Shown piece after piece: positions 7,233 through 55,393 of a stretch of DNA of 64,000 bases (positions are counted from its first letter, which is position 1; each line of letters begins with the position of its first letter). The notes beneath the pieces were generated by a model that saw nothing but the letters and a program-made list of their open reading frames with translations, was not told the DNA's origin and made no database searches. A program made the position numbers and the translations under genes. Source of the DNA: Scyliorhinus canicula (Eukaryota). The stretch spans positions 32,587,810-32,651,809 of the forward strand of contig NC_052152.1 in assembly GCF_902713615.1 (NCBI RefSeq), read 5' to 3'.

Positions 7233-9278
7233 TCAGGGGTGATTAGGGTGATCGGTGCCGGCTGGGGGGCAGAGGGCGCTATGGGGGGGCGCCGTCGGAG
7301 ACGGCGGTCGGTGCGGGGCGGGGAGCGTCGGTAGGGGGGGGGGGTCAGTGGGGAAAACGTCGGGGTCGGTGGGAGAGTCGGTGGGGTCGGTGGGAGAGCC
7401 AGCGGATGCCAGGTCTCGCAGGGAGACGGTATCCTGCCTGCCGTCGGGGTGCTCGACGTAGGCGTATTGAGGGTTTTCGTGCAGCAGGTGGACCCTCTCG
7501 ACTACTGGATCCATTTTATGGCTCCTCACGTGTCTCCGGAGTAGGACTGGACCCGGAGTCGTCAGCCAGGGTGGAAGCGAGACCCCAGAGGTGGACTTCC
7601 TGGGGAAGACAAACAAACGATTGTGAGGGGTCTCATTCACGGCCATACAGAGGAGTGACCTAATGGAGTGCAGGGCATCGGGTAGGACCTTCTGCCTGCG
7701 GGCGATTGGGAGACTCCTTGACCGTAGGGCTAGGAGGACAGCCTTCCAAACTGTCGCGTTCTCCCTCTCCACTTGCCCGTTTCCCTGCGGGTTATATTTC
7801 GTCATTCTGCTCGAGCTGAGCAGGTACCGACGCAACTCATCGCTCATGAACAATGTACCCCGGTCGCTGTGGATATAAGTGGGGAAACCAAACAGTGTGA
7901 ATATGTTGCGCAGTGACTTGATCACGGAGGCAGAGGTCATATCGGGGCAGGGGACAGCAAAAGGGAAGAGGGAGAACTCATCGATGACGGTGAGGAAATA
8001 GATGTTGCGGTTGGTGGATGGGAGGGGCCCTTTGAATTCCACACTTAGTCGCTCAAAGGGCCCAGAGGCCTTTATCAGGTGGGCCTTGTCTGGTCGATAG
8101 AATTGCGGTTTGCATTCCGCACAGATCTGGCATGCTTTAGTCATGGCCTTGACCTCCCCTGTGGAGTAGGGTAGGTTGCGGGACTTGATGAAGTGGGCAA
8201 GCTGGGTGACCCCCGGGTGGCAAGGGTCATCGTGGATGGATCTCAGGTGGTCCAATTGCACATTGGCGCACGTGCCGCGGGACAGGGCATCTGGGGACTC
8301 GTTGAGCTTCCCCGGGCGATATTTAATATCGTACGTATAGGTGGAGAGCTCTATTCTCCACCTCAGAATTTTGTCATTCTTTATTTTGCCCCATTGCGCG
8401 TTATCGAACATAAAGGCGACCGACCGTTGGTCGGTGACGAGGGTGAACCTCCTACCGGCTAGGTAGTTCCTCCAGTGTCGCACGGCCTCCACTATGGCTT
8501 GTGTCTCCTTCTCGACTGCAGAGTGCCGGATATCCAAGGCGTTGAGGGTTCGGGAGAAGAACGCTACTGGTCCGCCCGCCAGGTTGAGGGTAGCAGCCAG
8601 GGCGACGTCTGATGCGTCGCTTTCTACTTGGAAGGGGATGGCTTCGTCCACCACGTGCATGGCAGCCTTGCTGATGTCGGCCTTGATACGGCTGAAAGCC
8701 GACTGGGCCTCAGCCGTCAGGGAAAAAAACATGGTCTTAATGAGTGGTCGGGCTTTGTCCGCATACCTGGGGACCCACTGGGCGTAATAGGAGAAAAGGC
8801 CCAAGCACCATTTGAGTGCCTTGAGGCTACGGGGAAGTAAAAGTTCCTTTAGGGGACGCATGCGGTCGGGGTCTGGGCCTAGGACCCCGTTTTCCACGAC
8901 GTAGCCGAGGATGGCTAGCCGGGTTGTGTGAAACACGCATTTCTCTTTGTTGTACGTGAGGTTGAGGGCCCGGGCAGTCTGGAGGAACCTCCTCAGGTTT
9001 GCTTTGTGGTCCTGCTGATCATGGCCGCAGATGGTGACGTTGTCCAAGTACGGGAAGGTGGCCCGTAAGCCGTACTGGTCCACCATATGATCCATTGCCC
9101 TCTGGAAAACGGAGACTCCGTTTGTGACACCAAAAGGGACCCTGAGGAAGTGAAACAGCCGACCGGCTGCTTCGAAAGCTGTGTAGGGGCGGTCCTGTGG
9201 GCGGATAAGGAGTTGACGATAGGCCGATTTAAGGTCGACTGTGGAGAATACCCGATACTGGGCGATTTGGGTCACCAT
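7233..9278 (-). pseudogene. Gypsy pol (RT, RNase H, integrase)
   Basis: DLKSAY, VPFGVTN, YLDN, RNase H and integrase motifs; separated from the upstream ORF by a stop and apparent 1-bp deletions. Confidence 0.88.
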
Positions 9279-9358
9279 TTCTGCTATGCGGGGAAGTGGA
9301 TACGCATCGAGTTGCGTAAACGGTTTATGGTCTGGCTATAATCCACGACCATTCGCTG

Positions 9359-10912
9359 CTATTCCCCGGAGCGGACTACCAATACTTGAGCCCTCCAAGG
9401 GCTGTTGCTGGCCTCTATGACCCCCTCTTTTAGTAGCCGCTGAACCTCTGACTTGATGAAAGTCATGTCTTGGGTACTGTACCGGCGACTCTTGGTGGCG
9501 ACGGGCTTACAGTCGGGAGTGAGGTTCGCGAAGAGGGAGGGTGGCGCAACTTTGAGTGTCGCCAGGCTGCAGACGGTGAGTGGGGGCAGGGGCCCACTGA
9601 ACTTCAGTGTCAGGCTCCGGTGGCTGCACTGAAAGTCCAGACCAAGCAGCGGGGGGGAGCAGCGGCGAGGGAGGATGAAAAGTTTAAATTGGATGTATTC
9701 AGCGCCTTGAATTGCGAGGTCAGCGACACAATACCCCGTGATTTGTACCGAGTGGGACCCCGAAGCGAGGGCGATAGTTTGGGAGCCGGGGTGGGTGCAC
9801 AGGGAGCAGCGCCTTACCGTGTCTAGATGGATAAAGCTCTCCGTGCTCCCGGAGTCGAATAGGCAGGGAGTGTCGTGGCCGTTGACTTGAACCCACATCA
9901 TCGAGTTCCGCAGGTGCTTTGGCCGCGATTGATTGAGTGTGATCGCTCCTAGTTGTAGGCCGTCAGAGTCGAACTCACAAAATGGCCACCCGGAGTCACA
10001 AGATGGCCGCCGCCGCCGGTCGAACGTGTCGGGTTTCGAAGATGGCCGCCGCCAAGATGGCCGCTGCCATGACTTGCACGAGGTTGATGACGTGTCGGAG
10101 GTCGGGTTGCGGGGTCGGTGAGACCAGGAGCTTGATTTCTGGGCCTTGTGGGGATTTTGTTTGTGGCCTTTGGGCCCAGCCAGGCAGACTTTAGCGAAGT
10201 GCCCTTTCTTCCCGCAGTCATTGCAGATCGCGGAGTGGACCGGGCAACGCTGACGTGGGTGCTGACCTTGCCCACAGAAATAGCATGGGGAACCCCCGGA
10301 GTGGGCGGATCGCCGAGCGGCACAGGCCTGTAGCGTGGCCGAGTCTGGAGGGGATCGAGAGGGGTTTGCAAGGTCCACGGAGTACGTACGGAGGTTACGG
10401 TGTGCCGTTTCGAGAGAAGAGGCGAGCGTTAACGTGCCCTGGAGATCCTTTGCCCCATCTTCTGGGAGCCGCTGCCGGATGTACGAGGACCTGATACCAG
10501 ACACAAGGGCGTCGCGAATATGCAAGTTCCTGTGGTCTTCTGCCGTCACTGCTTTGTGGTCGCAGTTCCTCGCGAGCGCAGTGAGTCTTTCCACGAACTG
10601 GTCCAGTGTTTCCCCAGAACGCTGGCTGCAGGTTGAGAGCAAATGTCTGGCGTGTACCTTGTTAGTAGGTTTTATGAAGCGTTTCTTCAGTATTTCGACC
10701 GCCGCATCATAGGCCGTAGCGTTCTCGATCACGACGGAGAGTCGGTGGCACACCTGGCCATGTAGTAAACGCAGCTTGCGAGTGCTGTCGACATCAGTCG
10801 TTGAGGAGTTCAGATAGTCCTCGAAACACCGGAGCCAATATTTAAACATTTCAGGGGCTTCTGGCGACCTGGCGTCCAGGTTGAGTTTCTCCGGTTTTAG
10901 AACGCTGTCCAT
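9359..10912 (-). pseudogene. Gypsy gag-protease-RT N-terminal part, ending at a premature TAG
   Basis: CYFCGQGQHPRQRC, CNDCGKKGHFAKVC, LFDSGS, SNSPW. The RT motif MVVDYSQTIN continues after the TAG. Confidence 0.85.
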
Positions 10913-12960
10913 CTTGATATGTCTGTAGATTAAATTGAGGCACCCTCAATTACGACGCGAGAGCGAGGTCGGTAATCAAAAGGCTTTAATCTACAGAGAA
11001 CTGAACAGCATCCGAGAGAAGTGTGCTCACCAGATGGAGCCTTATCCTATATACCGTTTCCTGGGGGCGTAGCCAGAGGCGGAGTCCCCCAGGGTTCCAA
11101 GCCTCTTAAAGGGGCAAGGTATTAAAGGTCAGGTACCGTTTACGGCAGTTATTAATACCGTTCATCACAGCCTCATAGCTAGATGTAGTACGTTTATAAA
11201 ACCAAAAGCCAATGCCCAACTTGATCATGAATCTGTCCTTCAAAGATTTGCCTCCTTTACATGACCTCTATCAGACTGATGCATATTACTGAAGGAAGGT
11301 GAATTGCCAAAATCACCGAGATCATATTATAAAATAATCAAGCAGTGTAAAATTTAAAAGCAAAGTTCCACTTGCTACAGATGACAAAGTTCTGCGATAG
11401 TCATTAGTTTCCTAAGGTCTGCAGGTATACAACCGGTACATATTAATGAAAGAGTTTCAACTACCACAGCTGCTGAGAACATCCAATTGAAATAAATAAG
11501 TAATATAACATTTAAATTCAAAGTTCCACTTGCTACAGATGACGACGCTCTGCAACAGTCATTGGTTTCCCCAAGGTCTACAGGCATGTTCTAATTCCTG
11601 CTGATCACCCTAGCATGTCTTCTTTCACCTTGTATCACCTCAAGCGTGAAATATACTATCCGAGGCATTTAACACAAACTTGTGCTGCTTAAAAACGTGT
11701 ACTTCCCAAAGTATTTATAACAGTGCAGTGATAAAAAAAAAGTGCTTCACACATTGCACACTAAAGCTTAAAAAGGCTGTTTTAAAAAAAACTGCAGACT
11801 CGTTCAGAAAACATTTTTGCCTCAAATAGATCACTTGTAATCCATGAATCAATAATATTTTATGTCAGGACGGCATAAATTTTATGTGGATTGGTCATGC
11901 TAAATTGCCCCTTAATTGGGAAAATAAAATGAATTGGTACTCTAAAAATGTTTTTCAATAATAGTATTTTATCTCTCCTGCACCTTACTTTTATATTTAT
12001 CTCGTTACATCATGCTATTTCTTTAAACATCCCTCAGGAACAATCAGGAGAGAATTTGCGCAGAGGTTCAAAATCAGGTCATTTCTGTGATAGACCATCT
12101 ATGCCATTCCTCAAAGGTTTCTGTGGATCTTCCTCCTTTCCCTCCTCTCACCCTCAACTGTGCAAAAATCCAGGAAATCTCTTGCCTTGTTCTCTTCATT
12201 ACTTCATTAACATATGTAGTTGTTGACATCGAGGACCAACAATGGGATTAAATTCATTTCTTGGCGATGTTTGGTGCACGCATTGGTAAGTTTTCATAAG
12301 TTTCTGTCACGTAAATTATTTCAAACGTGTTAATGACATTATTAAAACAGCATCTACTGTAATTTTATATGAACACATTGTACATTATTTTTAATGAACA
12401 GGTCTACCTTAATTGTTCTTTTTGAAAGATCAGTATGTCTTAAGGAAAAAACCATTAGTAGTAGGGTAGGTTCTCTCACAAAAATAGTGCACTTCAGCCA
12501 TTTATTATCCTTTAAAAATATTTTTATTAAGAAAACTTTTCATTATAACACAGTAAGACACATAACAAATACAACTCAAAACATAACCACCTTCCCAATC
12601 ACACCCCCTCAAATAGAGAACAAAACTTAACTAACCACCCCCCCCCCCCAAAACAGCTGACAGTGACTAGCTCCTTAAAATAGGAAATTAATGGCAGCCA
12701 TCTCGACTAGAACCCTTCTAATCCTTCATGATGTACTTGACCTTCGCTAAATACAAAAACACAATAAGGTCACTCAACCGGGATGAGGGACTGGGTGGAA
12801 CCGGAGTCTTCACCCAAGCAGAACCTGCCCCCGGGCTAACAATGAGGCAAAGGTGAGTGCATCTGCCTTTACCCGTCTGCAGCTCCGGCGAGTACGAAAT
12901 CCCGAAAATGCCCACCAGCGGACAAGGTTACAGCTCAATTCCAAGAATCCCTGACGTAAA

Positions 12961-13162
12961 GGGTAGCACGGTGGCACGGTGGTTAGCACTGCTGTCTCAC
13001 GGCACCAAGGACCCGGGTTCGATCACTGTCCTTGTGGAGTTTACACATTGTCTGCGTGGGTCTCACTCCCACAACCCAAAATGTTGTGCAGGGATTGGCC
13101 ACGCTAAATTGTCACTTAATTGGAAAAATAGAATTGGATACTCTAAGTGTATTTTTTTTTTA
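12961..13162 (+). mobile_element. Short HE1-like SINE with A/T-rich tail and 15-bp TSD
   Basis: TSD aagaat(c/t)cctgac(g/a)t at 12943 and 13163. Confidence 0.8.
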
Positions 13163-13765
13163 AAGAATTCCTGACATTGTGTTGAGAAGGAGACCCAGAC
13201 GCTTCCAAGTTTAGGACATGACCAGGACACGCGCGCATGATTGGCCAGCCCCCTAGAACAACGCTTGCAGCTATCTTCCAGCCCCAGAAAAAACTCACTC
13301 ATCAGCGTCCTGGTCCGATGTGACCTGTGCACCACCTTAAACTGAATCAAGCTGAGCTTTGCACATTAGGAGGCAGCATTGACCCTGTGAAGAGCCTCAC
13401 TCCACAACTCGCCCCCACATCAAAAACCGGACCCAGCTCCCTCTCCCATTTCCTTTTTACCTCATCGAACGGAGCCTGCTCCATTGACAAGATCTGACCA
13501 TAAATATCAGAAATCCTCCCCTCTCCAACTCAGCCAGCAAAAGGATCGTCTCCAAAAGAGAAGATAAAGATGCCAGAGGAAAAGAAGGAATCTCCTTCTG
13601 CAAAAAGTCACGGACCTGAAAAAAAATCTAATTGGGAGTTGGAATTTATCGAGCAGCTCCTCAAACTGGTGAATTTCCCCTCTATAAACATGTCCCCAAA
13701 CCTCTCCAACCCCTCCCTGCCCATGATAGGAATGACAAATCCAAACCCTCCACTACAAAGAGATG

Positions 13766-18100: not shown

Positions 18101-18281
18101 TAGCAAAGCCTTTGTAGGTTGGAGTACTTTAAACTACAGAAGCTATGGGGATCATTTTCAATTTTGCTTCCTAGGAGTAACCTGTTGGTGTTGATTGCAT
18201 CCCTGTGGTAGAAATTTCATTCCATCCACCAGCTTTCCAACCAGGGCTGCAAAGTTGAAGATGATCTATTTTTACACTAAA

Positions 18282-18848
18282 TTACTTGAAAAGTACACTT
18301 AATTCATTGAGATGGGCCATTAGTGCAGGCTGCTCAAGAGATAAACTGGGTTGGGTGATTTCCTGCTGACCGCTCAAAGTTTTCATCTGAAGGTTAACAT
18401 ATTTGATTTTCAAGGTGCTTCTACCAACTGGCGTACAGCCAATTCCAAAGAGCTGCTCAAAAATTCCGAGGCACTGTGTGTTCTTGTGAATGGTGCCAGC
18501 CACCGCTACAGCAACGAACCCATGTTTAGAAGTTACACTTCTCATGCCGTTCTTGCTGATGTTGGGATTGAAGAGCAGTTGTTCATCCTTCACCAGGGAC
18601 AGCAAGCGCTGACTGACCATTGCCGAACTCTGGTAATGCTCGGTTTTCTGTTGCTCGCTTTTGTGTTCCCGGACAGAATAAGCAAAGTGAAGTATTGCAT
18701 CCTCCCAAAAGTGTTGTGGACCCCACTCTTCTGGTTGTTGGCCAAAGGAAGGATTTTGGGAGTTCAGAAGGATAAAGAACCATTGGCAGAACTTCTCCCC
18801 TATCATTTGGGAGTCAAAGTATCCATCTGTCTGCGATGGTGTCTCGCA
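18282..18848 (-). CDS. C3orf38-like paralog, gene B, terminal coding exon (DUF4518 C-terminal region)
   Basis: Phase-0 acceptor ctttccag|TGC; KFCQWFFILLNSQNP, EWGPQHFW, AVAGTIH, CLGIFEQLFG motifs; TAA at 18284-18282. Confidence 0.88.
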   Translation of the reverse strand, partial: CETPSQTDGYFDSQMIGEKFCQWFFILLNSQNPSFGQQPEEWGPQHFWEDAILHFAYSVREHKSEQQKTEHYQSSAMVSQRLLSLVKDEQLLFNPNISKNGMRSVTSKHGFVAVAVAGTIHKNTQCLGIFEQLFGIGCTPVGRSTLKIKYVNLQMKTLSGQQEITQPSLSLEQPALMAHLNELSVLFK

Positions 18849-19176
18849 CTGGAAAGTTATAAGGAGCAGGAATAAAATCAAATCATTAGAACAGCATACA
18901 AATGAATAGCAATGATAAATATATTTAAGGTATAAAATATGCACTGGGTAAGGAATAAAAGGAGGACATTGCAACCTTGTCCTTCCTTTGTTCTGAGAAC
19001 TAATAGTTGGAATTGGGACCAATGATTGTGTTGTGAACATAGAGGAAATTTAGCTAATGCTTGAGAGGATCTAAAGTAAGGAATAAAAACCAGTGTGGTC
19101 TTTAGATCATGAGAGAATGTAAATGCAGCTTTCTACCATAGCTCCCCAAGGAACATCCACATCTACTTGACATCGA

Positions 19177-19340
19177 GGGGCTGGTTTAGCTCACTGGGCT
19201 AAATCGCTGGCTTTGAAAGCAGACCAAGCAGGCCAGCAGCACGGTTCGATTCCCGTACCAACCTCCCCGGACAGGCGCCAGAATGTGGCGACTAGGGGCT
19301 TTTCACAGTAACTTCATTGAAGCCTACTCGTGACAATAAG
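19177..19340 (+). mobile_element. SINE family 2
   Basis: Similarity to other copies. Confidence 0.85.
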
Positions 19341-19385
19341 TGATTTTCATGTTCATTTCAAATTGAAAATGATGGGAAAATACTC

Positions 19386-19775
19386 AGATCATTAGAAAGG
19401 CAAAGAGCAGAACACACCACCAGACCCCACCATAATCACAGGCCCCTCTCACCCAGGTTATTCTCTCTTCCAACCTCTCCCATTGGGAAGAAGATACAAA
19501 TGTCTGAGAACACGCACTAATAGATTCAAAAACAGCTTCTTCCCCGGTGTCACCAGACTCCTGAATGACCCTCTTATGGACTGAACTGATCTCTACACGC
19601 ATCTTCTCTACTGAGTAGTACTACACTCCGTATGCTTCACCCGATGTCATATTTACATTGTATATCTATCAAGTATCCTTTTTTCATGTATTGACCGATC
19701 TGACTGGACCGTACACAGAACAATACTTTTCACTGTACCTCAGAACACATGACAATAAACCAAAATCTAATCCAG
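19386..19775 (+). mobile_element. Rex1-like LINE 3' fragment
   Basis: Similar to 34590-34935 (RTRTNR.KNSFFP coding stretch and cactgtacctc..gacaataaac tail). Confidence 0.75.
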
Positions 19776-19984
19776 ACTGTCTAGAGCATGAAATGCTCAA
19801 ATAAGAAATCCTCCTTTAATCGGGAATATTAGGTTGCCGTGGTGTGAAAGAAAGATGACAGTTTCACGCACAAGAATACAGAAAGGAAATATAAGAACAT
19901 AGGAAGAAGAAAAGGCCACTCAGGGGCAGCATGGTGGTGCAGTGGGTTAGCCCTGCTGCCTCACGGCACCGAGGTCCCAGGTTC

Positions 19985-21100
19985 TCTTTTCAGAAAGCCT
20001 CAGCTACCCACCTGGGACTACAGAGGCCTGGAGACAAACCACAAGCTGAAAGTTGCTGTGAGCAATATAACCCTCTCCAGGAAGCTGCTAAAAGTTGTAA
20101 GTATTGCATCTTGAAACCACAGAACTGAATCAATCTACAGGAATGTCATTGCAGGCTGTAGACAAGGACAAGGATCTACTTTTTCTCCAGAGAGACTGAG
20201 AGTGTTTATTTCTAAAACCACAGATACCTGAATTAATCCACAGTAAAAACATTGAACGGAAGGCCAGAATTGAAAAAAAGCTTCCGTAAATCTGAAGCAA
20301 AGACTCTTATCTATTCACTTTCCTTTTTTTTAAATAAATTTTAGAGTACCCAATTATTTTTTCCAATTAAGGGGCAATTTAGCGTGGCCAATTCACCTAA
20401 CCTGCACATCTTTTGGGTTGTGGGGGCGAAACCCACACAGACACGGGGAGAATGTGCAAACTCCACACGGACAGTGACCCAAGGCCGGGATTCGAACCCG
20501 GGTCCTCAGCGCCGTAGGCAGCAATGCTAACCACTGTGCCACCATGCTGCCCCACTTTTCTTTTTTAAATAAATTTAGAGTACCCAATTCATTTCTTCCA
20601 ATTAAGGGGCAATTTAGCGTGGCCAATCCACCTATCCTGCACATCTTTGTATTGTGGGGACGAAACCTACGCAAACACGGGGAGAACGTGCAAAGTCCAC
20701 ATCGAACCTGGGACCGCGGCGCCGTGAGACAGCAGGGCTAACCACTGCACCACCGTGCTTCCCCCTATTCACTTTCATCCTTATTATTTTTCACCCCTTC
20801 CCCTCCTCTGTTTGTCTGTCTTGCCTTGTGTTTGTGGGTAGATTGTGGAGACAGTGAAAGTGGGAGTCAGGAGTTAAATGATAGTTAACCAATTGTATTT
20901 ACTGTGTATGTTATTATAGTTCTTGTTATAAATAAACAGCAATTGTGTTTAAACCTGGTGACTGTAATTATTGGACAGTCAATGGCCAAAGACTCAGGGT
21001 ACTTTCATACGAATTATTGGTTAATTTGTCAACACTTTGTGTTGTAACTCCAAGGCATGTGGGCTGGAATTGACCGTGCACTAGCCCAGGGTGTCGTAAC
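19985..21100 (+). mobile_element. LTR fragment (3' part) interrupted by two SINEs
   Basis: AATAAA at about 20931 and a gtcgtaaca terminus. Confidence 0.5.
20323..20764 (-). mobile_element. Two tandem short HE1-like SINEs inside one 12-bp TSD
   Basis: ctattcactttc at 20311-20322 and 20765-20776. Confidence 0.85.
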
Positions 21101-21185
21101 AACTACGCCAATTTTTGATTAGTGCTGTATAGGCACAATGGCAGAATTACTTTTGTCTGATAAATATGAACATATACAAATATAG

Positions 21186-21723
21186 GAGCTGGTTTAGCAC
21201 AATGGGATAAACAGCTGGCTTGTAAAGCAGAACAAGGCCAGCAGCGCAGGTTGAATTCCCATACCAGTCTCCCCGAACAGGCGCAGGAATGTGGCGACTA
21301 GGAGCTTTTCACAATAATTTCATTGAAGCCTACTTGTGATAATAAATGATTATTATTATTATTATTAACCAAGAGGGCAGCACGGTAGCATGGTGGTTAG
21401 CATAAATGCTTCACAGCTCCAGGGTCCCAGGTTCGGTTCCCGGCTGGGTCACTGTTTGTGCGGAGTCTGCACGTCCTCCCCGTGTGTGTGTGGGTTTCCA
21501 CCGGGTGCTCCGGTTTCCTCCCACAGTCCAAAGATGTGCGGGTTAGGTGGATTGGCCATGCTAAATTGCCCGTAGTGTCCTAAAAAAAGTAAGGTTAAGG
21601 GGGGGGGGGTTGTTGGGTTACGGGTATAGGGTGGATACGTAGGTTTGAGTAGGGTGATCATTGCTCGGCACAACAGCAAGGGCCGAAGGGCCTGTTCTGT
21701 GCTGTACTGTTCTATGTTCTATG
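21186..21723 (+). mobile_element. SINE family-2 variant (21186-21365) followed by an HE1-like SINE (21376-21723)
   Basis: Similarity to other copies. Confidence 0.85.
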
Positions 21724-21794
21724 AAACAATATTGCAGAGTTTAGGATACAAAATCTCTGAGGTGCTAAACATTTTTTGATGTGAAATGAATTAC

Positions 21795-23587
21795 CTGTGT
21801 AACGTTCAAATGTATATTCATTTGTATTTCCAGTTGTCTCTTTGCCTCATCCTGTGCTTGCTCCCTCATTTGTTCTTGCACTTGTCTCTTAATTTGCTCT
21901 TCCAGGTGTCTTCTCGCCTTCTGCTCTGCTTGTTTCATAATTTGCTCATCCACTTCTCTTTTCCTCTGTTCTTCTGCTTGTCTTGCCTGTTCCTCCACTT
22001 GTCGTTTCCTCTGTTCTTCTGCTTGTCTTGCCTGTTCCTCCACTTGTCTTCTCCTCTGTTCTGCTGCTTGTCTTGCCTGTTCCTCCACTTGTCTTCTCCT
22101 CTGTTCTGCTGCTTGTCTTGCCTGCTCCTCCACTTGTCGTTTCCGCTGTTCTTCTGCTTGTCTTGCCTGTTCCTCCACTTGTCTTCTCCTCTGTTCTGCT
22201 GCTTGTCTTGCCTGTTCCTCCACTTGTCTTCTCCTCTGTTCTGCTGCTTGTCTTGCCTGCTCCTCCACTTGTCTTCTCCTCTGTTCTTCTGCTTGTCTTG
22301 CCTGTTCCTCCACTTGTCTTCTCCTCTGTTCTGCTGCTTGTTTTGCCTGCTCCTCCACTTGTCTTCTCCTCTGTTCTGCTGCTTGTCTTGCCTGTTCCTC
22401 CACTTGTCTTCTCCTCTGTTCTGCTGCTTGTCTTGCCTGTTCCTCCACTTGTCTTCTCCTCTGTTCTGCTGCTTGTCTTGCCTGCTCCTCCACTTGTCGT
22501 TTCCTCTGTTCTTCTGCTTGTCTTGCCTGTTCCTCCACTTGTCTTCTCCTCTGTTCTGCTGCTTGTCTTGCCTGTTCCTCCACTTGTCGTTTCCTCTGTT
22601 CTTCTGCTTGTCTTGCCTGTTCCTCCACTTGTCTTCTCCTCTGTTCTGCTGCTTGTCTTGCCTGTTCCTCCACTTGCCTTCTCCACTGTTTTTCTGCTTG
22701 TCTTGCCTGCTCCTCCACTTGTCGTTTCCTCTGTTCTTCGGCTTGTCTTGCCTGCTCCTCCACTTGTCTTGCCTGCTCCTCCACTTGTTGTTTCCTCTGT
22801 TCTTCGGCTTGTCTTGCCTGCTCCTCCACTTGTATTCTCTTCTGTTTTTCTGCTCGTCTTGCCTGCTTCTCCACTTGTCGTTTCCTCTGCTTTTCTGCTC
22901 GTCTTGCCTGCTCCTTCACTTGTCGTTTCCTCTGTTCTGCTGCTTGTCCTGCCTGCTTCTCCAGTTGTCTTCTCCACTGTTTTTCTAGTCTTCTTGCCTG
23001 CTTCTCCACTTGTCTTCTCCTCTGTTTTTCTGCTTGATTTGCCTGCTTCTCCACTTCTCTTTTCCGCTGTTCTTCTGCTTGTCTTACCAGCTCCTCCACT
23101 TGTCTTCTCTGTTTTTCTGCTCGTCTTGCCTTCTTCTTCAGTTGTCGTTTCCTCTGTTCGTCTTCTTGTCTTCCCTGCTCCTCCACTTGTCTTATCCTCT
23201 GTTCTTCTGCTTGTCTCCTCTGCCCCATCTCTCGTCTCCTTGCCTGCTCCTCCACTTGTCTTGCCTGCTCCAATTCCCTTTGTGCCACCTTGAATTCTTG
23301 TGCCTTGGCTTTTACCTTTGCTTTTTCAATTTTCCCCTGCTCCAATTCTTGTTTCCTAACTTGCAGCAGAAGGTTGTGATTTGTATTGTCTGTTACCTTT
23401 TTTTTCTTCCATTCTTCCTGTATCCAGTATAACAAAGCTTTGTTAATAAGTTGCTGTTTGTCTGCTGAAGCTGATATGACAATGTCATGCCTGAATAAGT
23501 ACTTCATTATTGCCTCTCGGACAACCTTCCGCCGTTTTAGTAGTTCTTCTGCACTTTGGCTATAATTTAGAATGACACTGATGGTTT
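21795..23587 (-). CDS. C3orf38-like paralog, gene B, coding exon 2 (1793 nt; YSQSAEELL domain followed by the long 15-aa repeat)
   Basis: Acceptor tttccttgtag|AA; ILNYSQSAEELLKRRKVVRE motif; no stop across 597 codons; phase-0 donor CAG|GTAATT at 21795/21794. Confidence 0.85.
21950..23270 (-). repeat. Coding minisatellite, 45-bp unit (QVEEQARQAAEQRRR), about 28 units
   Basis: Units counted directly from the translation of exon 2B. Confidence 0.95.
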
Positions 23588-23644
23588 CTACAAGGAAATC
23601 AAAAAAGAAGTTTAATTTGTATATATAACACTGGAATAACAATG

Positions 23645-25110
23645 ATTACAGCACAGAAGGAGGGCATTTATCCCATCATGTCTATTCAACAGCAACTTAG
23701 CTAGTCCCACTTTCCTTAGCTTTTTCCTTAGCCCTGATTTTTTTCCTCAGCTGCAATTCAAAATTGAAAGGTATCATTTGATCATTGTGTTCAGCAAAAC
23801 ATTCCGGTTGTAACCACTCATTGCGTAAAAGGGTTTCCTCATGTCAGTTTTGGGTTTTTGCCATTCTTAAATAGACTTTGGTTCTTGGCTCTACTGCCAA
23901 TGGGAAGTTTTTCTCTATCTGTTCTGACCAGAACCTCTCAGGACTTTAAACATCACTGTCAACTCTCCTCTCCACCTTCTCTTCTCCAAGGGAAACAAGT
24001 CCAACTTCTCCAATCCATCCACTTGACTGAACTCCCTCATTTCTGGAACCATTCTCATTTATCTGCATCCAGTCTTCACACCGTGAGGAGCCCAGAATTG
24101 AAAATGATACTCCAATTGAAGCAGAACCAGTATTTTATAAAGACTTATTACTAAACCCCTGGCTTTTCTACTCTCTGCCTTAATTTATAAAGTTCAGGAT
24201 CCTGTACACCATTTTAACTACTGTCTCAACTTACCCTGCCACCTTCAATAATTTGTATTGTTTCGAAAAGCTTTCCTGCCACTGCGGTTACACAGACAGG
24301 CCTGTACTTACTGAGTTTATCCTTACACCCCTTTGTTAACAAAGGTGTCTTCTGAGACTACCTCAATATCGAAGGAGTATTGGAAAATTATAGTTAGTAT
24401 TTCTGCAATTTCCAACCTTATTTGCCTCGGTATCCTCAGATGTATCCCAGCCAGTCCCTTCAACTTAAAGTACAAACAACCTTCCTAATACTGATCTGAA
24501 TTTTTAGCTCATCCAGTATCCCCCCTTTCTGTTGGAAACTTTAAGAGTCCCTTTTGGTTAGCTCCCAATTTCTTCTTATATTCTCTGCTACCTTCTCATT
24601 TCCTTTTTCACTTACCCACTGAACTTTCTATATTTAGCTTGATCCTCACTTGTATTATCAACTGGCACCCCTCTTTCTGCTTCACCTTAATCACTACCCT
24701 TTTCATTATGCTTCGCTCAGCAAAAGAAATCGGAGACCATTCAACACCACTTTCCCACCTACTCACAATATCCAAAGATTCCTTGGGGAGCAAGAAACTG
24801 TCAACCTCTACCTTAAATATATTCAAGAAAGGAACATCCACAACCCTCAGGGATAGACTTTCACAACCCTTTGAGTGAAGCTCTGGGGTTGTTTGTTCTA
24901 CCTTTACCCATCTTGTGAAAATAAAATGACTGTATCCACAGTATCGCCTCTTTAAAGGCAACCAGTTGTTCCATTACAGTTTTGCCTGACAATCTATGAT
25001 TCATTTTATCTGGGGTCAGATCTGTTCTCACCTCACTGAAATTGGCTCTCCTCCAATTCTATATTTTTACTCGATTGTTCCGAGCCTTTCTCTTTGCCTA
25101 ACATAAAATT
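23645..25110 (-). mobile_element. Old CR1-type LINE fragments
   Basis: Degenerate similarity to CR1 ORF2 and 3' end. Confidence 0.5.
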
Positions 25111-29322: not shown

Positions 29323-30005
29323 CTCTCTTCCCCTCCCCAATTGGCACCCTTCCCACTCTATCAGTTCCTTGTATATTTCCGAGACCCTCCCCTCCCCAAC
29401 CCCTGTTTTAGACATCACCTTATCCGGTAGTTAGCATGAGGCGAGAGAAGCTCGGGACCTGCCTCCGTCGGGAAACCCTCCTCAATGAAGACATCTCCAA
29501 ATCTCTCAATCCCTGCCCGTTGCCACCTCCTGAAGCCCTCGTCCAGCCCTCCCGGAGGGAACCGGTGATTGTTACAGATCAGTGACCACACCGACGCCCC
29601 CTCCCAGTCTCATGTGCTGCCAGTCCATTGCCCCCAAACTCTCAGGGCTGCCACATACCACTGGGCCTGTGGAGTACTGAGCCGGCGAGAACAGCAGAAG
29701 TGCCGTTAACAAAGCTTCAAACTCGTGCCCTTACAAGATGCCATTTCCACTCGCTCCAGCACCAACCCCTCCCCACTACCCATTTTTCCGAACCATCGAT
29801 ATATTAGCCGCCCAGTAGTAATGAATAAGTTGGAAGGGCCAGAGCCCCCAGCCCCCCCACCCCCCACCGCCCCCCGCGCCCCCCACCGCCCCACCCCCAC
29901 CGCCCCCCCCCCACCGCCCCCGCCCCCACCCCGCCCCCCCGCCCCCGCGCCCACCGCACCGCCCCGCCCCCACGCCCCCGCGCCCCCACCGCCCCCACCG
30001 CCCCC

Positions 30006-30595
30006 NNNNNNNNNNNNNNNNNNNNNNNNNNNNNNNNNNNNNNNNNNNNNNNNNNNNNNNNNNNNNNNNNNNNNNNNNNNNNNNNNNNNNNNNNNNNNNN
30101 NNNNNNNNNNNNNNNNNNNNNNNNNNNNNNNNNNNNNNNNNNNNNNNNNNNNNNNNNNNNNNNNNNNNNNNNNNNNNNNNNNNNNNNNNNNNNNNNNNNN
30201 NNNNNNNNNNNNNNNNNNNNNNNNNNNNNNNNNNNNNNNNNNNNNNNNNNNNNNNNNNNNNNNNNNNNNNNNNNNNNNNNNNNNNNNNNNNNNNNNNNNN
30301 NNNNNNNNNNNNNNNNNNNNNNNNNNNNNNNNNNNNNNNNNNNNNNNNNNNNNNNNNNNNNNNNNNNNNNNNNNNNNNNNNNNNNNNNNNNNNNNNNNNN
30401 NNNNNNNNNNNNNNNNNNNCCCCCACCCACNNNNNNNNNNNNNNNNNNNNNNNNNNNNNNNNNNNNNNNNNNNNNNNNNNNNNNNNNNNNNNNNNNNNNN
30501 NNNNNNNNNNNNNNNNNNNNNNNNNNNNNNNNNNNNNNNNNNNNNNNNNNNNNNNNNNNNNNNNNNNNNNNNNNNNNNNNNNNNNNNNNNNNNNN
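30006..30595. other. Assembly gap (N runs) within a poly-C low-complexity tract
   Basis: N characters. Confidence 1.
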
Positions 30596-31239
30596 CCCCA
30601 CCCACCCCCCACCCCCGCCCCCCCCCCCACCCCCCCCCCCCCACCCCCCCCCCCCACCCCCCACCACCCCCCCCACCCCCCCACCACCCACCACCCACCA
30701 GATGCCCCACCCCCTCATCTCTCCCGCCAAATGTTCGATGCCCTCAGCGTCATTGCCAAAGGCTCTATGGCCAGGGCAAACAGTAGTGGGGAGAGTGGAT
30801 ACCCCTGTTCTCATCCCCCGGCACAGACTAAAATATTCTGATCAAACCCTATTTGTCCTTACATTTGCCACCGGTGCCAAAGAGTCATCGGACTCGAAAC
30901 TTGAACTCTTTTCTCTCCCTACGTATGCTGCCAGACCTGCTGAGATTTTCCAGCATTTTCTTTCAATGTCATCCCAATTCAGGGCATATATATTTACCAA
31001 TACCGCAGCCATTCCCTTCAGCTTCCCAGAAACCATAACATATCTACCCCCCAAGTCCGCTTCTATATTCCCCACCAAAACCAACCTTTTGTTATTTTTA
31101 TTGAAATGCAAGGCGACTCTCTACAAACTCTCCCCAACAGATCCACTTTTAACTTAACTTATACTCGTTCTAACCTTTTAAAAATGAATTCTAAAGCTAA
31201 CATTATTACTAACCTCTCTTTTATCTTCCCTGCAGGCTT

Positions 31240-34200
31240 GAAGATCCTCCAGGCTTGAAGATCCTCCGAGGCCCTTGGAGACCTTTTGACCCGACCCGCC
31301 CTGACCTCCGTGACCTGGAAGAAGATCGGGCCCAAACCGGAAGTGAAGCCCCGACCTCGATTTGGAGCCGACCCGGGCCTCGGAGCTCCAAACCCGGCCT
31401 AACTACCGACGCCAGCCCCCGGATCTCCCGGCCTAGTCCCCGGAGCTCCCGACCCGACCCCCGACGGCAAGACCCGACCCAACGCGACCCCGAGAGACCC
31501 GCCAAGCGACCCGACCCGGAGAGGCCCGCCCAGCAACCCGACCTACCTGGTGATGGAAGAAATAAAAATCCACATGGAGGCCCCACAGTGCCGACTTCAA
31601 GATCCGACCCCAGGAGCGCCCAGGGAGGGAACAGACCATGGGACCTAGCCCAACCTGCCCCAGGAAGCCCCCGCCCACGACCCAGGACCCCAGAAACAAC
31701 GGAGACCGCGCGCGAGGACCCGAACACGCTGCAAGGTATTCCCGCGCCCGCAGAACGCCGGGACCCATCCGGATCGCAAACTCGCCCCCCCAGCAATCCC
31801 TTTACCTCAACCAGCGCCCGGGACCCTGCCAGACGCGACCCCGGAAACGTAAACAGCGCCCTGGGCCCCACCAGCGCCCTGGACCCCGCCAGACGCAACC
31901 ACCTACCTTCCACAAGGGCTGACGTCTCCCATTGGATCCCAGGATCATCCAGCAGCAGCCGCCGACCGAGGAAGCGAGGGAAACGCAGCGATCTGCAGGT
32001 TAGACTGAAGTAACGCGGTTTCAAGACCCCTCTCCCGAGCATACTGTGTTGTTCACCGCACATACTCCTGGCAAACGTCCAAGCGATTGAAAACAAGCTG
32101 GATGAACTTAACGCCATACTTACCTCTCAGAGGGAAGTAAGAGACTGCTGTGTGCTCTGTTTCACAGAGACATGGCTCACCCCCGCCTCACCGGACTGTG
32201 CCATACAACCTGAAGGCTTCTCTATTCACCGGGCGGACCGCACGGCATCTTCAGGCAAAGCGAAGGGTGGAGGGGTTTTTCCTCCTCATCAACTCCTCCT
32301 GGTGCTTGGATGTGGTGACCCTGGCGATCTACTGCTCCCCAGACCTGGAATGCTTGACCGTAAAGTGCCGCCCATACTATCTTCCACGTGAGTTCACTTC
32401 AGCCATTATCACAGCGGCCTACATCCCACCCCAGGCAGAAGTGAGGAAGGCGCTGGATGAACTTACACAGTCATAAACATCTATGAAACAGAACACCCGG
32501 AGGCCTTGTTCATTGTGGCCGGAGACTTCAACAAAGCCAACCTCAAGAGTGTACTGCCAAAATTCCACCAGCACATCTCCTGTCCCACCAGGGGCGACAA
32601 CACTCTTGACCACTGCTACTCAAAAATCCAGGGCGACTACCGTTCCATCCCCCGACCGCATTTTGGGAAATCAGACCATAAGACTGTGCTCCTTCTCCCG
32701 GCTTACAAGCAGAAACTCAAGCGGGAGAATCCAGCTAAGAAGGTTGTGCAGTGCTGGTCCGAGGAGACAGAAGAGCTCTTACGTGACTGCTTAGAGACAG
32801 TGGACTGGTCCATATTTAAGAACTCAGCGACTAACTTAAATGAGTATGCCACCACCGTCACAGACTTCATCAGCAAATGTGTGGACGACTACGTGCCAAA
32901 GAAAGCAGTACATACGTTCCCCAACCGGAAACCATAGCTCAACCGCGAGATTGACTCCCTACTGAAGGACAGATCTGAGGCATTCAAGGCAGACGACCCT
33001 GTCCTATACAAGAAATCCAGGTACGACCTCCGCAAAGCCACCCGAGATGCCAAGAGAGAATATCAAACTAAGCTAGAGTCACAGACAGACTCTCGGCGAT
33101 TGTGGCAAGGACTAAACAACATAACGGGCTACAAAGCGAAGCCGAGCAGTATCTCTGGCAGCAGCGCACCCCTCCCCGATGAACTTAATGCATTCTATGC
33201 TCGGTTTGAGCAGGTAACCAACAATCCGCTGTTGAGTGCCCCAGCAGCCCACAATTCACCCATACCCACCATCACAGTTTCCGAAGTCAGATCGGCCTTC
33301 CTGAAAGTGAACCCACGGAAGGGCATGGGCCCGGACGGGATCCCTGGTCGTGCACTCAGAGCCTGCGCATACCAGCTGGCAGAGGTATTCACAGACATCT
33401 TTAACCTATCCCTACTCCACTCCGAGGTCCCCACCTGTTTCAAGAAGACCGGTACCAAAGAAGAACCAGGCAACATGCCTCAATGACTACCGCCCGGTGG
33501 CCCTGACGTCAGTTGTAATGAAGTGCTTCAAGAGGCTGATCATGAAGCGCATCACCTCCATACTCCCGGAACGCCTTGACCCACTTCCATTCGCATACCG
33601 TCGCAACCGGTCCACATCAGACGCCATTTCCCTGGCCCTACACTCATCCCTAGAGCATCTTGAAAACAAGGACTCCTACATCAGACTCCTATTTATTGAC
33701 TACAGCTCTGCCTTCAACACCATAATCCCAGCTAAGCTCATATCAAAGCTCCAAAACCTAGGACTTGGCTCTCCACTCTGGAACTGGATCCTTGACTTTC
33801 TGACCAACAGACCACAATCAGTAAGAATGAACACCAACACCTCCTCCACAATAGTCCTCAATACCAGTGCCCCGCAAGGCTGCGTACTTAGCCCCCTACT
33901 CTACTCCCAGTACACACAAGACTGCGTGGCAAAACTTGGTTCCAACTCCATCTACAAGTTTGCTGACGATTCGACCATAGTGGGCCGGATCTCGAATAAC
34001 GACGAGTCCGAATACAGGAGGGAGATAGAGAATCTAGTGGAGTGGTGTAATGACAACAATCTCTCCCTCAATGCCAGCAAAACTAAAGAGCTGGTCATCG
34101 ACTTCAGGAAGCAAAGTACTGTACACACCCCTGTCAGCATCAACGGGGCCGAGGTGGAGATGGCTAGCAGTTTCAAATTCCTAGGGGTGTGTTATGTTTC

Positions 34201-34935
34201 TTAAATGATGGTGGTACTTCCATTTCCCATCAGCCCCTTCTGTACATACTCAGGCGAGGATCACTACAGGATGCACATCACCAAAAATCTGTCCTGGTCC
34301 ACTCACGTCGACGCTATCACCAAGAAAGCACAACAGCGCCTATACTTCCTCAGGAAACTAAGGAAATTCGGCGTGTCCACATTAACCCTTACCAACTTTT
34401 ACAGATGCACTATAGAAAGCATCCTATCGGGCTGCATCACAGCCTGGTATGGCAACTGCTCGGCCCAGGACCGCAAGGAACTTCAGAGAGTCGTGAATAC
34501 CGCCCAGTCCATCACACGAACCTGCCTCCCATCCATGGACTCCATCTACACCTCCCGCTCCCGCGGGACAGCGGGCAGCATAATCAAGGATCCCTCCCAC
34601 CCGGCTTACTCACTTTTCCAACTTCTTCCATCGGGCAGGAGATACAGAAGTCTGAGAACACGCACGAACAGACTCAAAAACAGCTTCTTCCCCACTGTCA
34701 CCAGACTCCTAAATGACCCTCTTATTGACTGACCTCATTAACACTACTCTGTATGTTTCAACCGATGCCAATGCTTATGTAGTTACATTGTATATCTTGT
34801 GTTGCCCTATTATGTATTCTCATGTATTTTCTTTAATTCCCTTTTCTTCCATGTACTGAATGATCTGTTGAGCTGCTTGCAGAAAAATACTTTTCACTGT
34901 ACCTCGGTACACGTGACAATAAACAAATCCAATCC
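31240..34935 (+). mobile_element. Rex1/Babar LINE, near full length, frameshifted
   Basis: [61 protein letters not shown] motifs; caatc-type tail. Confidence 0.9.
34190..34268. mobile_element. 79-bp LTR-like insertion (TGT...ACA) in Rex1
   Basis: Splits FLGV|HIT; flanked by gggtg / ggatg. Confidence 0.7.
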
Positions 34936-35388: not shown

Positions 35389-35512
35389 CTTCTGTAGTCG
35401 ATACGTTCATCTTGTTGTTTATAGTGTCCTTCAGTGCAAACAAATCACTGTAGCTTAAGAATTGTAGGATTTCAGTGCACCCTGTTTCTTGCATCACAGA
35501 AAAATTAGGCAT
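35389..35512 (-). CDS. C3orf38-like paralog, gene B, coding exon 1 (MPNFSVMQETGCTEILQFLSYSDLFALKDTINNKMNVSTTE)
   Basis: Aligns with gene A exon 1 (GC.EILQ.L...L..L.DT..N.M). Phase-1 donor GAAG|GTAGGT at the equivalent position. Confidence 0.85.
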
Positions 35513-36470: not shown

Positions 36471-39400
36471 GTTTGTGAAGGGGCTGTTGTCAAGTGACAG
36501 TTTGGATACGGGGGGGGGGAGATGACTCACCAGGGGAAGGCAGTAGTAGCCAGGCTCATGGCACCGTGGCTGGCTTTGCTGCACAGAAGGGCAGGAAAAA
36601 GATTGGCAGGACTATAGTCATAGGGGATTCAATCGTAAGGGGAGTAGACGGGCGTTTCTGTGGTCGAAAACGAGACTCCCGAATGGTATGTTGCCTCCCA
36701 GGTGCATGGGCCAGGGATGTCTCCGATCGGCTGCAGGACATACTGAAGGGGGAGGGTGAACAGCCAGTTGTCGTGGTGCATATAGGCACCAACGATATGG
36801 GTAGAAGACGGGATGAGGTCCTACAATCAGAATTTAGGGAGTTAGGAGATAAGTTAAAAAGTAGGACCTCAAAGGTAGTAATCTCAGGATTGCTACCAGT
36901 GTCACGAAACAGTCAGAGTAGAAATTTAAGAATAGTCAGAATGAATACGTGGCTTGAGAGATGGCGCAGGAGGGAGGGGTTCAGATTTTTGGGACATTGG
37001 AACCGGTTCTGGGGGCGGTGGGACCATTACAAATCGGATGGTCTACACCTGGGCAGGACTGGAACCAATGTTCTCGGGGGTGCTTTTGCTAACACTGTTG
37101 GGGAGGTTTTAAACTAATGTGGCAGGGGGATGGGAACCAGATTAGGAAGTTAGAGGTCAGTAAAGAAGCAGCAACTAAAGCCAGTAAGGTACTGGATAAT
37201 AAACTCAATGTGACTAAGGGGAAGAGTAGACAGGGAAGAGATGATGATCGCAAAGGGACAGGTGGTCTGAGGTGCATTTGTTTTAATGCAAGAAGTGTAG
37301 CAGGTAAGGCAGATGAATTTAGGGCTTGGATTAGTACCTGGGAATATGATGTTATTGGTATACTGAGACTTGGTTGAGGGATGGGCAAGACTGGCAACTA
37401 AATATCCCAGGGTATAGATGCTTCTGAAGGGATAGAGAGGGAGGTAAAAGGGTGGAGGAGTTGCATTACTGGACAGAGATGATATCACAGCTGTGATTAA
37501 GGAGGGCACGATGGAGGATTCGAGCACTGAGGCAATATGGATAGAGCTAAGAAATAGGAAGGGTGCAGTAACATTGTTGGGACTTTACTATAGGCCTCCC
37601 AAAAGCGAGCATGAAGTAGAGGTACAAATATGTAGACAGATTATAGAACAATGTAGGAGCAATAGGGTGGTTGTGATGGGAGATTTTAACTTCCCCAACA
37701 TTGAATGGGACTCATGTAGTTGGAGGCGTAGATGGAGCAGAATTTGTAAGGAGCATCTAGGAGAGTTTTTTAGAGCAGTATGTAAATAGTCCAACTCGGG
37801 AAGGGGCCATACTGGACCTGGTATTGGGGAATGATTCCGGACAGGTGGTTGACGTTTCAGTCGGCAATTACTTTGGGAATAGCAATCACAATTCCATAAG
37901 TTTTAGAATACTCGTGGACAAAGACGAGTGTGGTCCTAAAGGAAGAGTGCTAAATTGGGGAAAGGCCAACTATAACAAAATTCGGCAGGAGCTCGGGAAT
38001 GTGGATTGGGAGCAGCTGAATAAGGGTAAATTCACATTTGAAATGTGGGAGTCTTTTAAGGAAAGGTTGATCAGAGTGCAGGACAGACATGTTCCTGTGA
38101 AAATGAGAGATAGAAATGGCAAGATTAGGGAACCATGGATGAAGAGTGGAATTGTGAGACTAGCTAAGATGAAAAAGGAAACATACATAAGATCGAGGCG
38201 ACTCAAAACTGATGAAGCTTTGGAGGAATATCGGGAAAGTAGGACAAATCTCAAACGCATAATAAAGAGGGCTAAAAGGGGTCATGAAATATTGTTGGCT
38301 AACAGGGTTAAGGAAAATCCCAAAGCCTTTTATTCGTATATAAGGAGCAAGAGGGTAACTAGAGAAAGGATTGGCCCACTCAAAGACAAAAGAGGGAATT
38401 TATGCGTGGAGTCAGAGGAAATGAGTGAGCTTCTTAATGAGTACTTTGCATCGGTATTCACCAAGGAGAGGGACATGATGGATGTTGAGGCTAGGGATGG
38501 ATGTTTAAATACTCTAGGTCATGTCGGCATAAGGGGGAGGTTTTGGGTATTCTAAAAGGCATTAAGGTGGACAAGTCCCCAGGACCGAATGGGATCTATC
38601 CCAGGTTACTGAGGGAAGCGAGGGACGAAATTGCTGGGGCCTTAACAGATATCTTTGCAGCATCCTTGAGCACAGGTGAGGTCCCGGAGGACTGGAGAAT
38701 TGCTAATGTTGTTCCTTTGTTTAAGAAGGGTAGCAGGGATAATCCAGGGAATTATAGACCTGTGAGCTTGACGTCAGTGGTAGGCAAACTATTGGAGAAG
38801 ATACTGAGGGATAGGATCTATTCATATTTGGAAGAAAATAGACTTATCAGTGATAGGCAGCATGGTTTTGTGCAGGGAAGGTCATGTCTTACAAACCTAA
38901 TAGAATTAGAATTCTTTGAGGAAGTGACAAAGTTAGTTGATGAGGGAAGGGCTGTAGATGTCATATGAGGTTCAGGGTGTACTAGCTAGATGGATAAAGA
39001 ACTGGCTGGGCAACAGGAGACAGAGAGTAGTGGTGGAAGGGAGTCTCTCAAAATGGAGAAAGGTGACTAGTGATGTTCCACAGGGATCCGTGCTCGGACC
39101 ACTGTTGTTTGTGATATACATAAATGATCTGGAGGAAGGTATAAGTGGTCTGATGAGCAAGTTTGCAGATGATACTAAGATTGGTGGAGTTGCAGATAGC
39201 GAAGCGGACTGTCAGAGAATACAGCAAAATATAGATAGATTGAAGAGTTGGGCAGAGAAATGGCAGATGGGAGTTCAATCCAGGCAAATGCGAGGTGATG
39301 CATTTTGGACGATCTAACTCAAGAGCAGACTATATGGTCAATGGAAGAGTCCTGGGGAAAATTCATGTACAGAGAGATCTGGGAGTTCAAGTCCATTGTA

Positions 39401-42888: not shown

Positions 42889-42949
42889 CTGAATAAACAC
42901 AATAACCAGAGGATTACATAAGACAATGAGCTAATGCTCCTTTACCAAT

Positions 42950-44040: not shown

Positions 44041-44044
44041 GCTG

Positions 44045-46500: not shown

Positions 46501-46509
46501 ATCTTGTAA

Positions 46510-55380: not shown

Positions 55381-55393
55381 AGCCGCCACCCAC

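Follow-up and report, generated by a model that had tools for sequence, protein, structure and literature searches.

Whether a long 45-bp tandem repeat in the genome of the catshark Scyliorhinus canicula is translated, and what kind of structure its product would adopt, is the question raised by the stretch of DNA considered here, a window of 64,000 nucleotides (positions 32,587,810 to 32,651,809 of the forward strand of contig NC_052152.1, assembly GCF_902713615.1; coordinates given below are positions in this window). The repeat lies on the minus strand in the second exon of a gene, here called gene B, that appears from its sequence to be an elasmobranch-specific tandem paralogue of the vertebrate gene C3orf38 (DUF4518). 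Our favoured answer, to which we attach a probability of roughly 0.55, is that the array is the translated middle of an 827-aa protein and forms a monomeric, salt-bridge-stabilised single alpha-helix (SAH, of the ER/K type) that serves as a long spacer. A first-pass annotation of the repeat had proposed either such a helix or a pentadecad coiled coil; the gene context, the strong positive charge of the linker in this species (net +36) and the more basic and less SAH-like nature of its older units are additions to that picture.

Tandem Repeats Finder resolves the array into 18.3 copies of a 45-bp unit at 21949–22770 (93% matches) and about 10 further copies at 22763–23216/23271 (~80% matches). 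Translated in the minus-strand open frame at 21765–23642, which continues from the conserved-domain (DUF4518) part of exon 2, these copies give an iterated QVEEQARQA(A/E)EQR(R/K)R. When the units are parsed in register, exon-2 residues 110–543 (434 aa; 21957–23258, minus strand) comprise 28 full 15-residue units, one of them of 14 residues, together with an isolated 8-mer (residues 125–132) and a free QVEEQAR heptad (residues 267–273). The array contains three indels (24, 21 and 3 nt), each divisible by three, and the 597-residue exon-2 product has no Pro and four Gly. The first-pass annotation had described about 28 such units, a single free heptad and a sequence with no Pro and almost no Gly, all of which holds; its suggestion that the unit is built from related halves of 7 and 8 residues finds a counterpart in the orthologues, where units of both sizes occur.

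Unit parsing divides the array into two segments. The core (residues 274–543; 21957–22766, minus strand) consists of 18 near-identical units with a mean pairwise DNA identity of 94%, among which nine different DNA sequences are represented; these belong to two types, QAAEQRRR and QAEEQRKR, which follow one another in the order EEAEAEAAAAEAAEAAEE. It carries a net charge of +11, has the best SAH-like charge pattern in the array and contains no like-charge i+3/i+4 pairs. Residues 110–273 (22767–23258, minus strand) are older, degenerate units with a net charge of +23, much of it concentrated in a basic stretch at residues ~151–240 (~22866–23135, minus strand) with net +19 in 90 residues. In the two most basic 30-residue windows of this stretch (residues 181–240), residues of like charge are paired at i+3/i+4 just as often as residues of opposite charge.

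Because the array is rich in purines (82%) and poor in T (19 T in 810 bases), it can also be read without a stop in two out of three frames on the sense strand and in two on the antisense strand, and the open frame alone is no proof of coding. Comparison of the core units with one another gave no codon-position signal, with 8, 6 and 9 variable columns at the three positions, the units being too alike for this purpose. The coding status of the array rests on the gene model and on the orthologues.

Gene B comprises three exons on the minus strand. Exon 1 (35389–35512) was located with the N-termini of shark orthologues in a tblastn search against the whole window (E ~1e-15) and consists of 41 codons plus 1 nt, from an ATG at 35512–35510 to the donor AAG|gtaggt. 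Exon 2 (21795–23587; 1,793 nt, 597 codons plus 2 nt), delimited by the sequence and by the junction residues of orthologues, runs from the acceptor tag|AA (23588/23587, phase 1) to the donor CAG|gtaatt (21795/21794, phase 0). Exon 3 (18282–18848) begins at the acceptor ccag|TGC at 18848 and supplies 188 codons and the stop. The three join in phase to give the 827-aa protein with no internal stop, and its residues at the junctions agree with those of orthologues annotated in sharks, as in ...NITQ|CETLSQ of S. torazame. Against the Pfam family PF15008, for which the gathering cut-off is 27 bits, the N-terminal part of DUF4518 is recognised at exon-2 residues 2–70 (23376–23582, minus strand; 54.7 bits, E = 1.2e-14) and the C-terminal part, identified as NTF2-like with Foldseek, in exon 3 (171 bits, E = 3.2e-50). 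The repeat joins the N-terminal helical domain to this NTF2-like domain, and is bordered on one side by a non-repeat helical lead-in that is kept in S. torazame (residues 69–109; 23259–23381, minus strand; delimited with orthologues and AlphaFold2) and on the other by a non-repeat linker tail that ends ...QLEIQMNIHLNVTQ and is conserved across sharks (residues 544–597; 21795–21956, minus strand). As an internal exon of 1.8 kb, exon 2 (21795–23587, minus strand) is 78% purine on its sense strand. GAR-rich sequence is typical of exonic splicing enhancers, and may here help to define so long an exon.

A search with the non-repeat start of exon 2 identified eight annotated gene B orthologues of 383–453 aa, all of them matching PF15008, from six sharks (Scyliorhinus, Mustelus, Heptranchias, Carcharodon, Rhincodon and Cetorhinus) and two rays (Mobula and Hypanus). 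All eight agree with the gene B model in architecture and junction residues, and have an E/R/K/Q-rich linker of 110–192 aa at the identical place. In Carcharhiniformes, Lamniformes and Orectolobiformes alike, the non-repeat sequences that border the linker are kept in frame, as is seen in ...EEQIKRQVQEQMREQAQDEAKRQLEIQMNIHLNVTQ at one end and in the lead-in that follows YW(I/V)QEEW at the other; in Heptranchias the tail motif is only partly kept. This in-frame conservation of non-repeat flanks is what we regard as the strongest evidence here that the region codes.

A further, indirect line of evidence comes from the content of sampled sequence words in assembled contig sets. Fourteen sets that are probably RNA (43–219 Mb each, from at least nine studies, their RNA nature being a guess) contain 71–82% of the sampled words of exon 2 and 38–50% of those of the interval 18200–23700. 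After subtraction, these sets retain ~27–39% of the words outside exon 2, and exon 3 with the 3′ UTR would account for about 17 points of that share. Four other sets, which look like DNA, hold ~80% of the exon 2 words and 90–95% of those of 18200–23700. Such shares have the pattern expected of spliced mRNA with all of exon 2, while splice junctions and repeat number lie beyond their reach. We infer that the array is translated in this species.

What, then, would the translated array look like? The charge pattern argues for a helix stabilised from within. Opposite-charge pairs at i+3 and i+4 occur in the core at 0.60 per residue (E-to-R/K pairs at 0.16 and 0.16, and R/K-to-E pairs at 0.19 and 0.09, for i+4 and i+3, respectively), like-charge pairs are practically nil, and the net charge-pair score reaches z = 14 against shuffles of the same composition; the spacing of E and R/K by 3–4 residues described in the first-pass annotation is borne out. 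Among 5,000 permutations of each unit, the real order falls in the top 0.08–0.28%. A simplified Waggawagga-type score, which uses unit weights normalised to EEEEKKK and not the published matrices, stays at 0.30–0.37 along the array, the published default cut-off being 0.25 (PMC5812594). In composition the core is 49% charged and 27% Gln, 76% for the two together, and predicted SAH domains have ~80% charged residues plus N/Q (PMC5812594). Large hydrophobic residues (V/I/L/M/F/W/Y) account for 7% of the core, with one Val per 15 residues.

Around a helical wheel, the charged residues of the unit form a ladder (R14-E3-R7-E11-R15-E4 in angular order), the glutamines Q8, Q12, Q1 and Q5 line up in a second stripe, and a third, weak stripe is made of small residues together with an Arg (A9, R13, V2, A6, A10). 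The glutamines Q8, Q12, Q1′ and Q5′ are spaced by four residues. Single helices can gain stability from hydrogen bonds between Gln side chains and the backbone, also in combination with salt bridges (PMC9674830), and the four-residue spacing seen here would add to the stability of the helix.

Structure prediction points in the same direction. AlphaFold2, given the exon-2 protein alone, returned helix at residues 69–241 and 245–596 with pLDDT values of 60–80, a dip in confidence to ~50 in the basic stretch and, coinciding with that stretch, a single break at residues 242–244; the monomer modelling that the first-pass annotation had named as a check is thus in line with its helical rod. For the Mustelus orthologue, modelled with an 88-sequence alignment, the linker is one helix (residues 86–205) with pLDDT mostly 86–97, falling to 58–78 over the last 25 residues, and is flanked by a confident N-domain and a confident NTF2-like domain. 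According to Foldseek, the nearest solved folds to the latter are G3BP1, NTF2, NXT1/NXF1 and Bre5.

With a rise of 0.15 nm per residue, the 434 aa of the repeat itself would measure ~65 nm, the same length as had been estimated at the outset, the near-perfect core (270 aa) ~40 nm and the whole predicted helix (exon-2 residues 69–596, 528 aa) up to ~79 nm. Sivaramakrishnan and colleagues are reported to have put the persistence length of an ER/K helix at ~15 nm in 2009. With that value, a worm-like chain of 80 nm has a root-mean-square end-to-end distance of ~44 nm, and on this estimate the linker would be a semi-flexible tether and not a rigid ruler. Of the two roles originally suggested for the rod, ruler and tether, the first is further disfavoured by linker lengths that range from 110 to 549 aa among the orthologues (this species included) and by a core that is either recently expanded or homogenised; a semi-flexible tether or spacer fits better.

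The NTF2-like fold usually dimerises and binds short peptide motifs. We picture, conditionally, a protein in which an R-E-R-E-R-E ladder (E3, R7, E11, R14/R15, E4) would chain i+3/i+4 salt bridges along the linker without interruption, and in which the resulting helix would keep a distance of tens of nanometres between the N-terminal helical domain and an NTF2-like module that binds peptides and is probably dimeric. Such a linker would provide reach and low-force extensibility without any oligomerisation of the linker itself. This mechanism, including the monomeric state, real helicity and function of the linker, is one that we infer from the anatomy of the protein and from what is known of SAH linkers elsewhere (PMC5812594, PMC4183817, PMC4571873).

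How the linker came to be so long can be approached through the orthologues. The B proteins form one clade with 100/100 support, which the tree places neither firmly with shark gene A (the canonical C3orf38 gene in the window, described below) nor with C3orf38 of bony vertebrates. Repeat units differ by lineage, with a 15-mer in Scyliorhinus, an 8-mer (QVEEQTRR, seven copies) in Heptranchias and a 7-mer (RRQEEDL, four copies) in Mobula, so that the 15-mer is a 7+8 higher-order composite of an older Q-x-E-E-Q-x-R-R motif and the linker has expanded independently more than once. The linkers of the orthologues, almost neutral with net charges of −5 to +6, have a third to a fifth of the length of the one described here, and the S. 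torazame protein lacks the QAAEQRRR variant, which adds positive charge, although that record is partial and its repeat, of roughly 6 units, may be collapsed in the assembly. Taken together with the near-identity of the core units, these features suggest that both the length and the basic charge of the S. canicula linker are recent; the core has probably either expanded recently or had its units homogenised by concerted evolution. Its extreme length probably arose through unequal exchange or in-frame slippage in a coding minisatellite, the 45-bp unit of which keeps the reading frame. What the orthologues have all kept is a charged helical linker as such and, with it, the pattern of salt bridges (z = 2.9–10.5).

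Several other accounts of the array deserve consideration. Hydrophobic and small residues, whose recurrence every 15 residues the first-pass annotation had noticed, have a period of 3.75 (15/4) that is the top spectral peak (z = +5.8 against shuffles), and such a periodicity could reflect a right-handed (pentadecad, 15/4) or other non-canonical coiled coil of two or three chains, or an antiparallel fold-back stalk, having a seam of V2-A6-A9-(R13) flanked by the Gln stripe and a register perhaps set by dimerisation of the NTF2-like domain. That the C-terminal domain resembles dimeric NTF2-like domains (G3BP1, NTF2, Bre5, NXF1-NXT1) and that the single-sequence AlphaFold2 model has its one break at 242–244 are both in keeping with this. 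The seam, however, would offer per 15 residues one Val, two or three Ala and an Arg, in a core with 7% large hydrophobics; parallel chains, each with a net charge of +36, would repel one another; and a fold-back hairpin would lack a Gly or Pro turn site. Most shark orthologues, moreover, show a period of ~4.0 (z = 3.2–4.9) and not 3.75, and a period of ~4.0 would permit no continuous coiled-coil seam; none is significant at 3.5 or 3.67, and the 8-residue QVEEQTRR and 7-residue RRQEEDL units have no conserved register. A homodimer model of two 10-unit copies scored 0.00 against a mark of 0.32, a score that the tool counts neither way. We consider a coiled coil distinctly unlikely, and the SAH is well ahead of it in likelihood: of the structures first proposed for the array, the long helix stabilised by E-R/K pairs is upheld computationally by the charge pattern, by AlphaFold2 and by the two flanking domains, whereas the pentadecad coiled coil is weakly founded. 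Equally, the near-identity of the core units, which indicates recent expansion or homogenisation, the lack of length conservation, a charged fraction below that of classical SAH domains, pLDDT values of 60–80 and 312 compositionally similar segments found by phmmer in unrelated proteins could all be explained if the array were translated into a largely disordered polyampholyte or low-complexity segment with no stable helix, a neutral runaway minisatellite in a linker insensitive to length. Composition would not by itself account for an order of residues in the unit that is near-optimal for helix-stabilising pairs, however, and E, Q, A and R are strong helix formers, Pro is absent and Gly almost so, and AlphaFold2 predicts helix throughout, with high confidence in the orthologue; we think disorder quite improbable.

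A third possibility is compatible with the SAH itself, namely that its main role might be binding, to nucleic acid or to acidic polymers such as tubulin tails, and not spacing. The positive charge of the linker (+36 in all, +23 in the older units and +19 in a stretch of ~90 residues) would suit such a role, and there are precedents: the CAF-1 KER helix, a basic SAH, binds DNA where the neutral SAH of myosin-7a does not (PMC10335832), and the INCENP helix binds microtubules (PMC4571873). The basic stretch at residues ~151–240 may accordingly be a nucleic-acid-binding patch, or else a hinge. Against this, the linkers of all eight orthologues are near neutral, which suggests that the basic character is a recent by-product of the spread of E-to-A and E-to-K unit variants and is not conserved, and binding as the main role seems to us unlikely, if still worth entertaining. 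Very improbable, finally, is that the array lies outside the mature protein, either because it is skipped or because the gene is decaying. An AAG|gtaaca near 23395 (after ...EEWKKKK), roughly where gene A has its exon-2 donor, could be a retained ancestral donor used to skip the array; the array is open in several frames; five clustered replacements affect the NTF2-like domain, among them that of an otherwise invariant Trp; and no protein of this species turned up in the database. All eight orthologues, however, read through AAG|gtaaca into the linker and no short gene B isoform was present among database proteins of 103–329 aa, on which grounds we rejected skipping as the main form. The probable RNA sets hold 71–82% of the exon 2 words, the full model has no stop and, as regards decay, a relative-rate test with S. 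torazame was not significant (15 species-specific replacements in S. canicula against 9 in its sister).

The SAH spacer that we favour has difficulties of its own. Confidence in the AlphaFold2 model is moderate for the repeat itself, and over a basic segment of ~60–90 residues the rod may be hinged or partly unfolded. The charged share of the core is 49%, against up to 80% E/K/R in classical SAH domains, so that the helix would have to lean on Gln and Ala, and the linker as a whole is far from neutral at net +36. The 15/4 seam of V/A/A is also real, and NTF2-like dimerisation could bring two linkers side by side. As for expression, the evidence from word shares is indirect, and searches of the protein database did not turn up the gene B protein of S. 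canicula.

A bolder extension of the SAH reading, which we put forward as a tentative proposal, is that the C3orf38-B lineage might constitute a natural series of SAH lengths from 110 to 549 aa, in which the catshark helix would reach ~80 nm and, given an NTF2-like domain that dimerises, the protein would be a two-armed tether of ~150 nm whose reach is tuned by minisatellite copy number. The same joint proposal holds that the linkers were built independently from 7-, 8- and 15-residue units and that the Gln stripe adds side-chain-to-backbone stabilisation. If true, an SAH of ~80 nm would be several times longer than any that has been characterised.

The neighbouring gene places gene B in context. 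Gene A (42220–55520, minus strand; exons at 55520–55394, 49575–49388 and 42837–42223 followed by the stop), identified with Pfam, tblastn and the sequence itself, is the canonical C3orf38 and encodes 310 aa. In the part that could be aligned it is 98% identical to C3orf38 of Scyliorhinus torazame, and it clusters with the C3orf38 proteins of all vertebrates. Its three-exon structure and intron phases equal those of gene B, and its exon 2, at 62 codons, has ~35 S/G/N-rich residues where gene B has a 549-residue linker. The two genes lie head to tail on the minus strand with gene A upstream, and the A/B pair is also found on one chromosome-scale record in each of Mustelus, Carcharodon, Heptranchias and Hypanus. 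One feature of gene B stands apart: at ~18395–18440 (minus strand) in exon 3, five replacements within 13 codons (L>I, V>G, R>C, N>T, W>L) occur in this species only, and the replaced Trp of the NTF2-like domain is invariant in 88 aligned homologues. This cluster could be due to locally relaxed constraint, to adaptation or to sequence error; the gene B protein in this species is not obviously decaying.

Open reading frames of retroelements were observed at 7233–10912 (minus strand), 32100–34730 (plus strand) and 36490–39950 (plus strand), and include LTR-type gag/pol frames (517 and 681 aa) as well as pieces of LINE-like endonuclease and reverse transcriptase; some of them lie inside gene B intron 1 and some between genes A and B. 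The same intron contains runs of N at 29800–30600 (579 N in the window), amid G-rich low-complexity sequence that would code for poly-Gly and poly-Pro. Copies of a SINE-like element were seen at 12857–13174, 48602–48907, 52289–52682 and ~20393–20674, the last in gene B intron 2. Beginning beside gene A exon 1, the interval 54500–64000 is occupied by long GC-rich satellite-like arrays (55–66% G+C, positive GC skew) that are open in several frames, with translations of the type GNVSV... and CQCV...

Should the prediction of a helix hold, few natural single alpha-helices would be as long, and this one would be made from a nearly perfect repeat. It would offer a convenient scaffold on which to ask how the stiffness and stability of an SAH scale with length, how Gln and Ala can replace charge, and how a tether's reach is tuned through coding minisatellites. 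It would also give a first structural handle on a paralogue of C3orf38, a gene flagged among the most understudied selectively essential human genes (PMC9576728) and for whose function our literature search found no mechanistic account.

How does the array compare with systems already described? Searches for relatives of the repeat itself yielded no family: neither TPH nor any other Pfam family was found over the repeat in the 625-aa ORF at E ≤ 1, and an ESM Atlas search with the repeat gave no usable match. Candidates from a sequence search of the PDB (designed helical repeats and apolipoproteins) were set aside as compositional similarity, and the 312 weak matches that phmmer returned among 1.84 billion representatives belong to unrelated architectures (caspase, AsmA and response-regulator proteins) and were read as convergence, not as a family. 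On the strength of these Pfam, PDB, ESM Atlas and phmmer searches, the repeat appears to have no homologous family.

Within its own lineage the nearest comparison is with canonical C3orf38, which shares the N-terminal helices, the NTF2-like domain, the three exons and the intron phases, and differs in having a short S/G/N-rich connector where gene B has its 549-residue helical linker. Trichohyalin and other E/R/Q-rich repeat proteins carry tandem repeats that have long been proposed to form single-stranded helical rods; the array resembles them in being an E/R/Q-dominated tandem repeat, whilst neither its host protein nor its domain setting is related to theirs. Ile, Leu or Val make up the cores of pentadecad right-handed coiled coils, of which the stalks of trimeric autotransporter adhesins are an example. 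The 15-residue period and the 15/4 seam are common to both, but the seam here is V/A/A/R and its register is not conserved.

Like the CAF-1 KER helix, the array would be a basic SAH that also serves as a spacer, and from the KER it is clear that an SAH can acquire nucleic-acid binding through a surplus of positive charge (PMC10335832). There is no sequence relationship between the two, however, and the basic character of gene B is species-specific and concentrated in the degenerate units.

It is the SAH or ER/K linkers that come closest, sharing with the array uninterrupted networks of opposite charge at i+3/i+4, an almost complete lack of large hydrophobic residues and a position between two domains. 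The roles suggested for such linkers are those of a spacer, of a constant-force spring or of a 'dog leash' (PMC5812594, PMC4183817, PMC4571873). A 90-aa SAH has been called the longest described (PMC10335832), and the SAH of INCENP is thought to reach ~80 nm only when stretched (PMC4571873). The catshark linker, known here from sequence and prediction, differs in its 434–528 residues, its 49% charged and 27% Gln content, its near-perfect tandem organisation in place of an irregular sequence and its net charge of +36. By its properties it would be an extreme and unusually regular member of the SAH class, housed in a new host protein, and not a new kind of element.

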